Program-made: the position numbers and the translations under genes
Shown here: one piece after another, positions 43,826-50,710 of the stretch
How positions within the stretch are numbered: the first letter of the stretch is position 1
Layout of the letters: every line of letters begins with the position of its first letter
From: Macrostomum hystrix
Lineage: Eukaryota; Animalia; Platyhelminthes
Direction: 5' to 3'
Assembly: GCA_950097015.1 (NCBI GenBank)
Contig: CATNEN010000031.1
Coordinates: 1,364,001-1,428,000 of the forward strand
DNA: 64,000 nt
Notes under the pieces: generated by a model
What the model saw: only the letters and a program-made list of their open reading frames with translations
Told to the model about the DNA's origin: nothing
Database searches by the model: none

Positions 43826-46382
43826 ATGCAGTGGGGTGGCTCTGAATCTACTGCACAGCAGCAGCAGCAGGCAGCCATGCTGGATCCAGCCTGCTGGCAG
43901 CACCTGCCAGTCTGTGTTGGTGCCATTTTGAAGGCGCCCACTACAACACCCAGTGACTCAGGTGAGAATAAGCTTTGAGCAACCCCCCACGATATATGAG
44001 TACTATATTCATTTTGGATTTCTTATCCAAAACTAAACACATGTCAGCGATACTAAGCCACCTCCTGCCCTCTAATTATCACTTAATTATAATTATCCTG
44101 CCCTCTAAATTCAAGCCGATTGTTTACCACCGCCACTTCGGCCACTAATTTTTGTTGCAGACAGCTCCACCAGCTATCGAGTTGGAAAGAAGCTGGTCAG
44201 AAAGTTTGACGTCATCGGACTCTGCCGCTCTGCCTCGGAATTTGATGGCTATTTCAAGTGCCTAAGTGAGACACAAGAGGGCAGGGGTACATTAGTACAT
44301 TAGTTGTCGCTTAGCTAACTAACGGGCTGGCTAGCTGTGGAGGTGTGCCTTAGCTTCTAACCCATTGAGATTGCTACATTGTTATCTGTGGTAGCTCCAC
44401 TTAGAACACTCCCTCTACTACTAATTAGTAGTCAGAGAAAGATATACGTATTCAGTTGTCAGAGAAAGATGCTCTTCTTTTTTATTTGATTGATATAAAT
44501 CATCAACCGCCCACACCTCACCCACCACCTCAGAATTCATCGCTGGCGGCTCTTAGCCCTAACCCACCACCCCAAAACTCCTAGTTGGCGGCTCTTACCC
44601 ACTAACCCACCACCCCAAAACTCCTAGTTGGCGGTTCTTACCCACTAACCAACCACCCCAAAACTCCTAGTTGGCGGTTCTTACCCACTAACCAACCACC
44701 CGAAAACTCCTAGTTGGCGGCTCTTACCCACTTACCCACCACCCGAAAACTCCTAGTTTGCGACTCTTACCCACTTACCCACCACCCGAAAACTCCTAGT
44801 TGGCGACTCTTACCAACTAACCCACCACCCGAAAACTCCTAGTTTGCGACTCTTACCCACTAACCCACCACCCGAAAACTCCTAGTTGGCGGCTCTTACT
44901 CCCTAACCCACCACCACAAAACTCCTAGTTGGCGGCTCTTAATCCCTAACCCACCACCCCAAAACTCCTAGTTGGCGGCTCTTAATCCCTAACCCACCAC
45001 CGCCATAACCAGTTGACGACGGCACCGGTTCAATAGGCTGCACCCTGTGGAAGCCGCATCCGCCGCCGCCGACGCTGCACAGTTTCCGAGCGGCCAGACA
45101 GTTGGACGGCTTCGCTGTAGCCACCACCGGAAGTGTCGCTCATACCATCAATGACGACGAAAGCAGGGACGCCACCACAGTTGGAGCAGGTATGGCTGAA
45201 GCTGCCGGGTACGCAACATTGGGCGCCGAGGATGGACTGGCGGAGCTCCTGTTGACCGAGGCGGAGGCTGCACTGTCGACCGACTCATCGAAGCCCAAAC
45301 CCGGCGTCAGCCTGCATGTGCGCGGCCTGGTTCGCGAATTCCGCGGCAATCGTGAGCTCAGCTGCGGCTACTACAGGGTCTGCCAGCCCAGCGAAGAGCT
45401 CCTCAGACTAGAAAGGGTGGCCCGGCTGGCTGATCCTGCCTGCCCGTTTGGCTACGGCATGCGGCTCCGGCTGCCCGATGGTCTCTGCAGGCGGCTCTGC
45501 ATGGCGGAGGCAGCCCGGGACCAAGTGAGCCAATGTCACTGTCAGACTGTCTCACGAATTAGCAGTGGACTCTCTCTCACCTACATTGGACTCTGTGTGT
45601 CTCTCTAATCTCCATTGCACTCTCTGTCTCTCCATCGGACTCTCTGTCTCTCCATCGGACTCACTGTCTCTCCATCGGACTCTCTGTCTCTCCATCGGAC
45701 TCTCTGTCTCTCCATTGGTCTCTCTGTCTCTCCATTGGTCTCTCTGTCTCTCCATTGGTCTCTCTGTCTCTCCATCGGACTCTCTGTCTCTCCATCGGAC
45801 TCTCTGTCTCTCCATTGGACTCTCTGTCTCTCCATTGGTCTCTCTGTCTCTCCATCGGACTCTATGTCTCTCCATCGGACTCTCTGTCTCTCTAATCTCT
45901 CTGGCACTAAATCTCGTTGACACTGGATTATCAACCAGGATACTCAAGCGCAGCAGCGCCTGTTGCATCACCTGCGCTCGCACCGATTGCACCGGTTCTC
46001 CCCGGCCGACCTTCTGTTGCTAAGCGGCTCTGATTGGCTGCCGGCAACCGAGGCCCATCTGAAGACGTCCCTGCTCGATCCCCTTGTTGCTGCGGGACAC
46101 CTGCGCGCCTGGCTCTGCGAAGACACCGGCCGGCGGCAGTACCAGCTGTGCGAGGCCGACCATTCTCTCAGCCTGGACATTGTCCACACTCTGCGCCAGC
46201 TGCGCGACTCCAGCTCGACCGGCGGCGGCGTAAGCGAACTGGCCCTGCTGGGCCGGCTGCGAAGAAATAGCCGCGGCCGCTACCCGGGCCTGACCGAGGC
46301 CGGCCTGCGCCGACTCCTGGACCGCCTGGCTGAGGACAGCCGCATCGTCTGCGTGGCGCCGAGAACCTACGCCAGCGTCTGA
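43826..46382 (+). CDS. STN1: CST complex subunit STN1 (OBFC1): OB fold plus C-terminal winged-helix-like region
   Basis: Phase-consistent exons 43826-43961, 44161-44265, 45013-45524, 45939-46382. OB-fold motifs: LDPACW, VRKFDVIG, IDDGTGSIGCTLWK (recalled STN1 VDDSTGVINCICWK), LHVRGLVREFRGNREL..EELLRLERVARL. Confidence 0.85.
44540..45005. repeat. 43-bp C-rich minisatellite (cttacccactaacccaccaccccaaaactcctagttggcggct), ~11 copies
   Basis: Direct periodicity; in STN1 intron 2, running up to the acceptor at 45011-45012. Confidence 0.93.
45580..45895. repeat. 20-bp minisatellite (ctctctgtctctccatcgga), ~15 copies
   Basis: Direct periodicity; STN1 intron 3. Confidence 0.93.
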
Positions 46383-46471
46383 CCGGCCGATCGCCATCAT
46401 TGTTGGCAATGACCATTTCTTGTTGACAATGACCATTCATTGTTGGTCGGTCAGAGATTTACGGTCAGAGA

Positions 46472-46513
46472 CCGTAAAATCGGTCTCTTACTGCGAAGAC
46501 TCAATTTATTGCA
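46472..46513 (+). other. Spliced-leader-like sequence (genomic SL relic, not an intact SL RNA gene)
   Basis: ccgtaaaatcggtctcttactgcgaagactcaatttattgca matches 40 of 42 positions of the M. lignano SL as I recall it (CCGTAAAGACGGTCTCTTACTGCGAAGACTCAATTTATTGCATG). The terminal TG and the downstream GT donor are missing. Confidence 0.75.
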
Positions 46514-47004
46514 GAGATTACAAATATCTTCAAATGAACTTTGTACAGGCATTCCGGGCCCTAGGGCCGTCCGGAATATGCGTATCGAGAAATTTTACCG
46601 TTGCCCCTCCTTCCAGGAGAGGAACGTCATCACCATGCACAGCCGACCTTTGCTTTCTACCATAGACTGCGGACACTTGGACCGTCTACTCCGCGATTTT
46701 GAAGTACTTAACAACGACCATATCATTTTTATTACGTGCTCAAATCAGTTGCTCAATTCTAGCCAGCAATGCATCGGTAAAAATGCTTAAGTTGTGCAAA
46801 TGTACTTAACGTAAGAGCAGATACAAGCTACATAAAACTGCCATGCTTTTTAAATACATTTGTAGCTTCTCAAAAACTGCAGCTTTTTGCGCTGTATAAA
46901 ATTATGTCACATTTTTCTGCATTATTTAAACAGTTCAAAATTTCAAGTCTATCTTTGCGTGATGATCAGTGAGTCATTCAGTGTTAGTCACTTACTTTTT
47001 CCTC

Positions 47005-47538
47005 ACTGACTGACAGATCCCCTGACTGACTGATCCCCTTACTGACTGATCCCCTGACTGACTGATCCCCTTACTGACTGATCCCCTTACTGACTGATCC
47101 CCTGACTGACTGATCCCCTGACTGACTGATCCCCTGACTGACTGATCCCCTTACTGACTGATCCCCTTACTGACTGATCCCCTGACTGACTGATCCCCTG
47201 AATGACTGATCCCCTGACTGACTGATCCCCTGACTGACTGATCCCCTGACTGACTGATCCCCTGACTGACTGATCCCCTGACTGACTGATCCCCTGACTG
47301 ACAGATCCCCTGACTGACTGATCCCCTGACTGACAGATCCCCTGACTGACTGATCCCCTTACTGACTGATCCCCTGACTGACTGATCCCCTGACTGACTG
47401 ATCCCCTGACTGACAGATCCCCTGACTGACTGATCCCCTGACTGACAGATCCCCTGACTGACTGATCCCCTGACTGACTGATCCCCTTACTGACTGATCC
47501 CCTGACTGACTGATCCCTGACTGACTGATCCCCTGACT
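47005..47538. repeat. 16-bp minisatellite (actgatcccctgactg), ~33 copies
   Basis: Direct periodicity; ends ~40 nt from the bHLH stop codon. Confidence 0.95.
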
Positions 47539-47578
47539 GGGGGCAGCAGACAACCTCAAGGCGTTAAAGAGGGGCCAG

Positions 47579-48317
47579 CTATCCGCAGCTGTCGCCAGTT
47601 GCGCGCCACAGGAAACTCGGCGGAGAGTCTTTGTTCTGGGCCAGCAGAAGCAGCTGACGGTAGCTGGAGCTGCTCGCCGGGCTGAAGCCATTGTCCAGCT
47701 CAGCCAGGACCGATTGCAGCAGGCGGATGTACTCGATGGCGATTCGCAGAGTCTTCATCTTGGACAGCCGCTTGGTCTTGTTCTCGTAGGGGATCTGTCT
47801 GCGATAATGTCGTGCATGTGCTAGTTGTTTAGTTCGCGAGTTCAAGGCACAGTGAGTGTAAACTGCCAGATGTACACACCCTGTGTGAGCGTGTGCGTGT
47901 GTGCTCAGGAGAATGGGTCAGAACTGTCGGCAGAATGGGCAGATTTGCGTCCTCGCTGGCTGCGTGTCTTGTCACAAAACGATGCGCCATTGCCAAACAT
48001 TTCTGCTACAAATATCATTAACTAATATTACGAGTACTAACCCTGCACTATTATTTTACAATTAAAATCAATTCTCACTTTCGTAGTCTGCTAAACGCCA
48101 GATTGACAGCCTTAACGCGCTGCCTCTCCCTGGCGTTCCTTTTGGCCATCACGGTTCTAGATTTGCATTTAGCCTGATGCTGCTGCTGCTCAGGGACCAC
48201 CTGGCCGCATGTAGGATTCTGCGGATGCTGCGTCTTGCATAGCTGGACTCCACCCCGACTTGTGCTGGGAAATTCTTTTTGCCGACCGCGGGTGTTTGTG
48301 CAACCGCTCGGTTCCAT
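47579..48317 (-). CDS. ASCL: Achaete-scute-family bHLH transcription factor, two coding exons, ~152 aa
   Basis: Exons 48317-48079 and 47798-47579 join in phase 2 to give AKRNARERQRVKAVNLAFSRLRK/QIPYENKTKRLSKMKTLRIAIEYIRLLQSVL, which fits the recalled ASCL consensus RNxRERxRVKxVN..LR..KKLSKxETLRxAIxYI. Confidence 0.87.
47843..47995 (+). mobile_element. SINE family B body fragment inside the bHLH intron
   Basis: Shares caaggcacag, cagatgtacacac, gtgtgctcaggag, ggcagaat, ctggctgcg and gccattgcc with 25028-25350. Confidence 0.7.
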
Positions 48318-48564
48318 TCTGTCTTTGTCGCAGAAAATCCCAAAAAAACTTAAACTGTCTTGCTAGCTCTTTGCCCACCCTTTTAATATTGCATTCGTGA
48401 CTCTTTTAAGAGGCTGCAATTGGCTGACTAGTAATAGGCCCTAGAAGCTATCAATTTTTATAGTTTTGTGTTGGCTTATTTGCTCATAATTCAAGAATGC
48501 TTCATACATGTAGCTGTGTGTTCACTTTTAGATTCTGAAGAAATGATTTTTTAGAAGATTTTCT

Positions 48565-50710
48565 GAAGCACCGATTTCTGAGTCGGCTCTCTGAAGCAAT
48601 GATTTCTGAGTCGGCTCTTTGGAGCAACGATTTCTGAGTCCACTCTACGAAAGAATAGTTTTTGAGTCGGCTCTCTGAAGCAATGATTTCTGAGTCGGCT
48701 CTTTGGAGCAACGATTTCTGAGTCCACTCTACGAAAGAATAGTTTTTGAGTCGGCTCTCTGAAGCAATGATTTCTGAGTCGGCTCTTTGGAGCAACGATT
48801 TCTGAGTCCACTCTACGAAAGAATAGTTTTTGAGTCGGCTCTCTGAAGCAATGATTTCTGAGTCGGCTACCTGAAGCAATGATTTCTGAGTCGGCTACCT
48901 GAAGCAATGGTTTCTGAGTCGGCTCTCTAATGGAATGGTTTCTGAGTCGGCTCTTTGGAGCAATGATTTCTGAGTCCACTCTCTGAAAGAATGGTTTTTG
49001 AGTCGGTTCTTTGAAGCAATGATTTCTGAGTCGGCTCTCTGAAGCAATGATTTCTGAGTCGGCTCTCTGAAGCAATGATTTCTGAGTCGGCTCTCTGAAA
49101 GAATGGTTTCTGAGTCGGCTCTCTGAAAGAATGGTTTCTGAGTCGGCTCCCTGAAGCAATGATTTCCGAGTCGGCTCTCTAATGGAATGGTTTCTGAGTC
49201 GGCTCCCTGAAGCAATGATTTCCGAGTCGGCTCTCTAATGGAATGGTTTCTGAGTCGGCTCTTTGAAGCAATGATTTCTGAGTCGGCTCTCTGAAGCAAT
49301 GATTTCTGAGTCGGCTCTCTGAAGCAATGATTTCTGAGTCGGCTCTCTGAAAGAATGGTTTCTGAGTCGGCTCCCTGAAGCAATGATTTCCGAGTCGGCT
49401 CCCTGAAGCAATGATTTCCGAGTCGGCTCTCTAATGGAATGGTTTCTGAGTCGGCTCCCTGAAGCAATGATTTCCGAGTCGGCTCTCTAATGGAATGGTT
49501 TCTGAGTCGGCTCCCTGAAGCAATGATTTCCGAGTCGGCTCTCTAATGGAATGGTTTCTGAGTCGGCTCTTTAGAGCAATGATTTCTGAGTCGGCTCTCT
49601 GAAGCAATGATTTCTGAGTCGGCTCCCTGAAGCAATGGTTTCTGAGTCGGCTCTCTAATGGAATGGTTTCTGAGTCGGCTCTTTGGAGCAATTATATCTG
49701 AGTCCACTCTCTGAAAGAATGGTTTTTGAGTCGGTTCTTTGAAGCAATGATTTCTGAGTTGGCTCTCTCAAGCAATGATTTCTGAGTCGGCTCTCTAATG
49801 GAATGGTTTCTGAGTCGGCTCTTTGGAGCAATGATTTCTGAGTCCACTCTCTGAAAGAATGGTTTTTGAGTCGGTTCTTTGAAGCAATGATTTCTGAGTC
49901 GTCTCCCTGAAGCAATGGTTTCTGAGTCGGTTCTTTGGAGCAATTATATCTGAGTCCACTCTCTGAAAGAATGGTTTTTGAGTCGGTTCTTTGAAGCAAT
50001 GATTTCTGAGTCGGCTCTTCGGAGCAATGATTTCTGAGTTGGCTCTCTCAAGCAATGATTTCTGAGTCGGCTCCCTGAAGCAATGGTTTCTGAGTCCGCT
50101 CTCTAATAGAATGGTTTCTGAGTCGGTTCTTTGGAGCAACGATTTCTGAGTCGGCTCTCTGAAGCACTGATTTCTGAGTCGGCTCTTTGGAGCAATGATT
50201 TCTGAGTCCACTCTCTGAAAGAATGGTTTTTGAGTCGGTTCTTTGAAGCAATGATTTCTGAGTCGGCTCTTTGGAGCAATGATTTCTGAGTCGGCTCTCT
50301 GAAGCAATGATTTCTGAGTCGGCTCCCTGAAGCAATGGTTTCTGAGTCGGCTCTCTAATGGAATGGTTTCTGAGTCGGCTCTTTGGAGCAATGATTTCTG
50401 AGTCCACTCTCTGAAAGAATGGTTTTTGAGTCGGTTCTTTGAAGCAATGATTTCTGAGTCGGCTCTCTCAAGCAATGATTTCTGAGTCGGCTCTCTAATG
50501 GAATGGTTTCTGAGTCGGCTCTTTGGAGCAATGATTTCTGAGTCCACTCTCTGAAAGAATGGTTTTTGAGTCGGTTCTTTGAAGCAATGGTTTCTGAGTC
50601 GGCTCTTTGGAGCAATGATTTCTGAGTCCACTCTCTGAAAGAATGGTTTCTGAGTCGGCTCTTTGGAGCAACGATTTCTGAGTCGGCTCTCCGAAAGAAT
50701 AGTTTCAGAG
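48565..50710. repeat. 28-bp multi-variant minisatellite (gaagcaatgatttctgagtcggctctct), ~76 units with 84-bp higher-order blocks
   Basis: 28-bp periodicity around a constant tttctgagtc core; source of many repetitive minus-strand ORFs. Confidence 0.95.

Follow-up and report, generated by a model that had tools for sequence, protein, structure and literature searches.

The window, which is the whole 64,000-nt stretch of Macrostomum hystrix DNA that was analyzed, contains a partial copy of the spliced leader (SL) shortly after the stop codon of a gene referred to below as the upstream gene. After the TGA at 46380-46382 come a 20-nt tandem repeat (46397-46446), CGGTCAGAGA twice, 42 nt of leader, and GAGATTACAAATA. 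The leader copy, referred to as the relic in subsequent discussion, starts 88-90 nt downstream of the TGA. The features of the region are as follows.

45963-46382, forward strand: last open frame of the upstream gene (an ORF that is present in RNA contigs), ending with the TGA.
46397-46446, forward strand: about 2.5 copies of the 20-nt tandem repeat in the 3' UTR, directly upstream of the relic (repeat analysis).
46448-46471, forward strand: CGGTCAGAGA in two exact copies with a 14-nt period (46448-46457 and 46462-46471), a local tandem duplication that spans the fold-back loop.
46448-46466, forward strand: left arm, an inverted and internally gapped copy of the first 24 nt of the relic, in which CGGT, AGAGA, and TTTACGGTC pair with ACTG, TCTCT, and GACCGTAAA; 9 nt are 100% complementary.
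46470-46513, forward strand: SL relic, with 46472-46513 corresponding to SL nt 2-43 at 40 of 42 positions; the GA that precedes them makes AGAGACCG (46467-46474) palindromic with CGGTCTCT (46481-46488).
46482-46513, forward strand: SL core, 32 nt identical to the tandem SL RNA genes (sequence comparison).
46505-46514, forward strand: acceptor-like TTTATTGCAG, with its AG at 46513-46514; no use was detected in RNA contigs.
46514-46526, forward strand: GAGATTACAAATA, the 13 nt after the relic, 12 of which are held in common with one other SL relic locus, C7:6703430, on the minus strand.
46484-46811 (46535-46902 in a third data set), no strand assigned: stretch of RNA contig that is colinear with the genome across the 3' junction of the relic, probably the rest of the 3' UTR of the upstream gene.

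The first-pass annotation of this DNA had placed the relic about 90 nt after the stop codon of STN1. The distance was accurate. The name is at best hinted at, in that the best matches among PDB sequences to the preceding ORF (45102-45608) were OB-fold proteins, including STN1, with an E value of about 1. Neither Pfam nor two large homology searches gave useful information on the family of the upstream gene. An exhaustive search with the last exon returned an astacin-repeat protein, which was rejected as unrelated and not an orthologue. These searches therefore yielded no orthologous 3' UTR with which the insertion might be dated. An intron of the upstream gene contains a long tandem repeat of ~60 nt (45560-45960). 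Beyond the relic region, a 540-nt (CTGACTGACTGATCCC)n-like microsatellite (47000-47540) lies between it and a two-exon bHLH-type gene with RERQRV...LSKMKTLRIAIEYI motifs, which is on the minus strand (47579-47845 and 48075-48317) and converges on the relic region. A long tandem repeat of ~100 nt at 48500-50630 gives minus-strand open frames.

As the reference SL, we took the exon that precedes a GT donor in the tandemly repeated SL RNA genes of contigs C15, C17, and C42. The genome searched comprised 220 Mb in 42 contigs, with the window copy on C31. The relic differs from this reference only at 46479-46480, where it has AT instead of GA. No match with 3 or fewer mismatches was found in 100 shuffles of the window. 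Thus, the claim that 42 nt match the Macrostomum SL holds against the SL that the genome itself encodes. SL words reached a depth of ~25,000 in the RNA-type sequencing runs, and in one run the template-switch oligonucleotide abuts the first bases of the leader, which fixes the 5' end of the RNA. At its 3' end the relic reads ...TTATTGCA followed by GAGATT, and the terminal TG of the leader is absent. Direct reading of the sequence at this end gave neither an ATG nor a GT donor, and TTTATTGCAG creates the AG at 46513-46514, all as the first-pass annotation had described. It can be argued from the perfect 32-nt core that the event was recent.

The relic is present in genomic DNA. Contigs from a DNA run, which may derive from the same sample as the assembly, span 45950-46510 and 46488-47005 with 0-1 differences and at single-copy depth, and both junctions of the relic are present in these genomic reads. 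No empty site was found among the contigs. These results do not support an assembly artifact.

True SL RNA genes have features that the relic lacks. A genome search with the 32-nt core gave 73 matches with 2 or fewer mismatches and 0 in the reversed control. About 25 of the 73 are in the tandem arrays on C15, C17, and C42, which have an 11.6-kb period. The exon in the array units is 45 nt long and has ATG as its last three bases; gtaag and a U-rich Sm-like site come after it, so that the exon boundary reads GCATG/gtaag as opposed to GCA/gagatt in the window. In one unit (L005) a U1 snRNA gene (Rfam, 152 bits) precedes the SL gene by ~300 nt, with both on one strand; the one further array unit scanned, L011, gave no U1. 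The array on C17 switches orientation between 68 kb and 80 kb. Three array units, L011 (C17:37702), L023 (C42:43168), and L040 (C42:73831), differ in sequence, beginning 11 nt before the start of the SL gene, and the spacing to the next SL copy increases from 11.6 to ~18.9 kb at C17:37702 and C42:43168. This arrangement points to a putative insertion at a fixed point before the SL gene in these three units.

Sequence around the relic was examined for these features. No GT donor, no U-rich site within 100 nt, and no Rfam match above noise were found at the relic, and its flanks do not resemble those of true SL genes, including the intron part. The window copy is solitary on C31, outside the tandem arrays. 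It is nevertheless conceivable that the relic arose at the DNA level, as a copy of an SL RNA gene that has since decayed, because solitary copies do exist outside the arrays. The copy at C1:16047914 (L001) is one of these; it is 5' truncated, having lost the first ~6 nt of the leader and the promoter side, and has kept the donor and part of the intron. We consider a pseudogene of this kind very improbable for the window. The similarity ends 2 nt before the end of the exon, both the promoter side and the intron side are unlike those of real SL genes, neither an Rfam match nor an Sm-like site was found, and 32 of 32 identical core positions amid unrelated surroundings are not expected from gradual decay.

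The 5' end of the relic folds back on itself. TTTACGGTC (46458-46466) pairs with GACCGTAAA (46470-46478) around the loop AGA to form 9 perfect bp, or 11 bp if a 1-nt bulge is allowed. The fold of this hairpin as DNA has an energy of -8.0 kcal/mol (z, -5.7), and 0 of 200 shuffles were as good. The first-pass annotation had described a hairpin of ~11 bp leading into the SL, which is correct for the bulged form and understates the inverted copy. With gaps, 46448-46466 pairs with 46470-46493 over 9+5+4 = 18 bp (z, -4.1 for the fold of 46445-46495), and the inverted copy extends over the first 24 nt of the leader. The AT-for-GA substitutions of the relic are mirrored in the left arm, which would allow more than one order of events. 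A competing hairpin between AGAGACCG and CGGTCTCT has a z score of -4.9. These short DNA hairpins are significant; the RNA fold of the whole region is unremarkable (z, -1.9).

A possible source for the fold-back is found in the leader itself, which contains CCGT-AAAG-ACGG. A first-strand cDNA that ends at this sequence might loop back and use itself as the template for TCTCT, and the result would be an AGAGA extension before CCGT on the sense strand, as seen in the window. Such structures are uncommon among relics. A stem of at least 9 bp at the 5' end of the leader was present in 3 of 90 sampled distinct relic loci, and AGAGA followed by the leader occurs genome-wide at exactly three loci, the window, C3:7909538, and C11:3964689.

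Three runs were judged to be RNA because they contained about one-third of the words of the region, lacked 46814-47005, and in one case included library adaptors. RNA contigs of 1133-1353 nt begin in spliced exons of the upstream gene, pass the stop codon and the hairpin, and end at 46507-46510. Further RNA contigs cover 46484-46811 in two runs and 46535-46902 in the third. The break between the two sets lies where the 31-mers become identical to those of the true leader, and therefore it is attributed to an assembly effect; the words that flank the break are both unique to the window locus. Unitigs break at shared SL words, and we infer that single RNA molecules are continuous across the relic. 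The relic is thus probably transcribed in cis as part of the 3' UTR of the upstream gene. RNA depth on the downstream side of the relic exceeded that on the upstream side by a factor of 1.2-2.2, which could reflect either 3' bias or a separate transcript, the RNA contigs carrying neither strand nor transcript ends.

One option raised in the first-pass annotation was that the relic has been reused as a new trans-splice acceptor. TTTATTGCAG at 46505-46514 does combine an AG with a preceding pyrimidine-rich tract, as an acceptor would. If a fresh leader were joined at the AG at 46513-46514, the product would read GCATGAGATT, in which the genomic sequence gains one T. Across 46513/46514 the RNA contigs match the genome and lack this diagnostic T, within the limit that such contigs drop rare forms. 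No branching was seen at the point where a fresh SL would merge, the contig being unbranched over 46484-46811 in two of the three RNA data sets. These results leave the option unsupported without disproving it. There is no evidence that the relic acts as a splice site or has a function; rare forms could escape the contigs.

A more elaborate form of this option is hard-wiring in place. A natively trans-spliced downstream cistron would begin after 46514, its own cDNA would have recombined back and installed the leader, and the loss of one T, from GCATG/AG to GCAG/AG, would have rebuilt a reusable acceptor. We regard both the installation and the one-base loss as distinctly unlikely. Such a history would account for downstream sequence that is unique and parentless, and the genomic GCAGAGATT is one T off the expected trans-spliced product. 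The somewhat higher RNA depth downstream of the relic would also fit, and relics are known to be recycled in dinoflagellates (PMC6050394, PMC5585692). Upstream, the near-copy CAGAGATTTAC (46452-46462) looks like a former acceptor joined to the beginning of an exon, but it is no better than chance. Furthermore, the junction RNA contigs have the genomic form and are unbranched in two data sets, as described above, and the downstream ORFs are short and without homologues.

The flanks of the relic did not lead to a source. In a genome BLAST of 46383-47010, matches elsewhere were limited to the leader part, and a sensitive BLAST of the flanks against 120 relic loci found nothing. A six-frame protein search with the region 46515-47010 found no paralogue or parent in the genome, and the frame after the relic had no homologue in a large protein collection and no Pfam family. 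There is no A tract up to 47000, and the best candidate for a target-site duplication, a flanking repeat of CAGAGATT(T)AC, was no better than random pairings of flanks. Neither a reverse transcriptase (RT) or endonuclease ORF nor a repeated element was found downstream in the window. Scans for tRNA and Rfam families at the site were negative; a mir-128 match was discarded as noise (19 bits versus a gathering score of 49 bits). An ATG is present 21 nt after the relic and is followed by short ORFs of 43 and 70 aa.

These searches bear directly on the possibility, also listed in the first-pass annotation, that an SL-capped mRNA was retroposed behind the upstream gene, as a retrogene or processed pseudogene, and now occupies everything from the relic to ~46811-46902. 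The relic does begin at the 5' end of the leader, with a fold-back, the stretch is transcribed and includes the ATG and the two ORFs, and other relics precede intronless ORFs, as at C7:6703430. However, the undiverged core means that the insertion would be young, and yet no parent or paralogue was found at the DNA or protein level in the 220-Mb, 42-contig assembly. Nor was there a homologue, a Pfam family, poly(A), or a flanking repeat beyond chance. A retroposed mRNA was therefore not demonstrated, and we consider it unlikely.

The locus at C7:6703430 is the only one that has the same 3' junction as the window. Its leader is also cut after GCA and is followed by GAGAGTACAAATA, identical to the window at 12 of 13 positions, and a pattern search for copies of the junction found the window and this locus only. 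No homology between the two was found beyond the ~13-22 nt at the junction. The leader at C7 lies 47 nt before a single-copy intronless ORF of 219 aa. Pfam gave no family for the ORFs at C7 or for the paralogue, and the sole paralogue of the 219-aa ORF, at C1:10858016, carries a CCHC knuckle ahead of the homologous stretch.

A recurrent break of this kind might be expected if the relic were the 5' junction of a non-LTR element of the NeSL, CRE, or SLACS type that targets SL genes and was carried to an ectopic site, the remaining option of the first-pass annotation. The break after ...TTATTGCA into GAGAKTACAAATA does recur at a second locus, and some SL array units carry insertions. However, the recurrence of the GCA/GAGA break with shared downstream sequence is limited to that one other locus, the common stretch is only ~13-22 nt, no RT or endonuclease ORF or repeat lies downstream in the window, and the ORF at C7 has no Pfam family. 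The missing element body largely refutes this explanation, which we consider extremely unlikely.

The shared junction suggests that both relics, in the window and on C7, were copied from the beginning of one kind of leader RNA, which may derive from a retroelement; the window holds only its first 55-65 nt. Because the same leader and 13-nt junction precede an intronless ORF on C7, it was probably a retroelement-type or retrogene transcript whose leader served as the source RNA. The ending ...TTACA resembles the LTR ends of relic-bearing families, and the flanks in the window are single copy. A link between the window relic and LTR elements is suggested by the junction at C7 together with LTR families in which the relic is 13-50 nt from the LTR end.

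Relics of the SL are common in this genome. A search with a 23-nt SL core, allowing 3 or fewer mismatches, gave 305 sites compared with 0 in the reversed control. About 25 of these are real genes, which leaves ~280 sites outside SL RNA genes. Many relics are in LTRs, in repeat families with conservation on either side of the leader, or at the 5' ends of LINEs. Some families occur as direct pairs 7.2-8.4 kb apart, with the leader 13-50 nt before an ...ACA end that is followed by a PBS-like TGGCGCCC. At C7:9274920 (L004, minus strand) the leader is complete through the ATG, with one mismatch near its 5' end (gccAtaaagac), and an ORF with an Exo_endo_phos domain (E value, 4e-11) begins 33 nt after it. 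This locus is thus the 5' end of a LINE-type element with the host SL at its head.

Two families of relics are abundant. A family of ~20 copies (L029, L031, L038, L042-L045, L049, L052, L056-L059, L066-L069, L071-L073) has the mutated leader ACGGCGAAGGCTC, with ATA for ATG and conserved flanks, in LTR-like direct pairs 7.2-8.4 kb apart. In a second family (L097-L102, L107-L111, L118-L121, and others) 13 nt separate the leader from an LTR-like end, ...TTACA or ...AGACA, and the PBS-like TGGCGCCC comes next in several copies.

Among the 90 sampled relics, the leader ended in ATG in 23 dispersed copies, in ATA in 35 (mostly in LTR families), and in other sequences in about 25; an AGA ending was restricted to the window and one other locus. 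Most dispersed relics have lost the terminal ATG, a pattern that would be compatible with selection against upstream start codons in leader-bearing elements. Relics as a class are common and linked to reverse transcription, and as a member of this class the window copy is not special.

The other two loci with AGAGA before the leader, L076 (C3:7909538) and L077 (C11:3964689), have a setting in common with one further relic, L094 (C38:31412367). In each, the 5' end of the relic faces the 5' end of an antisense SINE at a distance of 11-30 nt. This SINE is tRNA-like, very abundant, and young, with >3000 first-look candidates at 97-99% identity; ARAGORN was negative. At L076 the junction also contains a tandem duplication of 14 nt. 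Together with the junction at C7, these arrangements hint that an antisense SL cDNA, free and briefly extended by snap-back, may have been used repeatedly. A common source sequence, instead of independent snap-backs, could also account for the 12-of-13 junction at C7 and for the 5-nt extension that is identical at three loci.

A broader proposal would join these loci to the hard-wiring described above. The relic would be a metazoan counterpart of dinoflagellate leader recycling, in which the cDNA of a trans-spliced cistron hard-wired its leader and a one-base loss rebuilt the AG, making re-capping possible. Alongside, self-primed antisense SL cDNA with the 5-nt snap-back extension would be a recurrent intermediate, also fused head to head with SINE copies. 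This combined scenario is speculative, and we think it quite improbable.

The explanation that we favor is that the relic is a nonfunctional scar of reverse transcription, a snapped-back SL cDNA that was captured in the chromosome and is now passive in a 3' UTR. We regard this as the probable, though by no means secure, account of the locus. An RNA led by the SL would have been reverse transcribed. The 3' end of the cDNA, the complement of the leader start with its small palindrome CCGT/ACGG, may then have snapped back and primed its own extension, producing the palindromic AGAGA and the inverted copy. The short 5'-terminal product, comprising the leader and at most ~13-22 nt more, would have been patched into the chromosome ~88 nt past the stop codon, and local slippage could have generated the duplication with the 14-nt period. 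Since then, the relic would have been carried passively in the 3' UTR of the upstream gene.

From the fold-back and the shared junction we infer the snap-back mechanism and the nature of the source RNA. Counting against a snap-back scar, there is no target-site duplication beyond chance and no poly(A) to indicate the route of integration. A 5'-terminal fragment is also not the usual product of LINE-type target-primed reverse transcription, and the mirrored 5' substitutions and the possible common source of the shared junction and extension count against this reading as well. The core idea of the first-pass annotation, a relic of SL reverse transcription with a 5' fold-back that is neither an SL RNA gene nor an assembly artifact, stands.

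The relic has practical consequences for transcript annotation. Leader-removal pipelines will trim a perfect 32-nt leader copy in a 3' UTR and score it as a trans-splice site, which at this locus would suggest a false operon or downstream gene.

Comparison with known systems places the relic among products of reverse transcription. Compared with an SL RNA gene, it has 40 of 42 leader nucleotides in common but lacks the donor, the Sm-like site, the array, and the linked U1 gene. In parasitic flatworm genomes, 597 loci with partial leaders have been reported in association with LTRs and LINEs (PMC12582326, Mol Biol Evol 2025). As in M. hystrix, these are scattered leader exons without SL RNA gene features, and they were read as reverse-transcribed trans-spliced RNA. 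The LTR-like families and the LINE 5' end with the Exo_endo_phos ORF in this genome belong to the same classes as those of the parasites. In contrast, the window copy is attached to no recognizable mobile element, its flanks are unique, it sits in the transcribed 3' region of a gene, and it has its own 5' fold-back. It thus adds a gene-embedded case with no recognizable transposon attached, a marker, to the evidence that trans-spliced RNAs of flatworms re-enter the genome by reverse transcription.

The relic DinoSL retrogenes of dinoflagellates are similar in that a DNA-encoded leader remnant marks an RNA intermediate and can supply an AG for renewed trans-splicing (PMC6050394, PMC5585692). 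Unlike those retrogenes, the window gave no detectable retrogene body, parent gene, stacked relics, or renewed trans-splicing.

The closest parallel to the fold-back is in retroviruses. Self-priming of strong-stop cDNA at a terminal hairpin is established for retroviral reverse transcription (PMC6088434). In minus-strand strong-stop DNA, which folds back at the cTAR hairpin, a short 5'-terminal cDNA likewise copies itself from its 3' end on a palindrome, which leaves an inverted repeat on the side of the RNA 5' end. Such DNA is known from reverse transcription in vitro and in virions and is not known as a chromosomal insert, which is what the window would hold. The fold-back therefore hints at how flatworm leader RNAs may re-enter the genome, through self-priming at the small palindrome of the leader itself.
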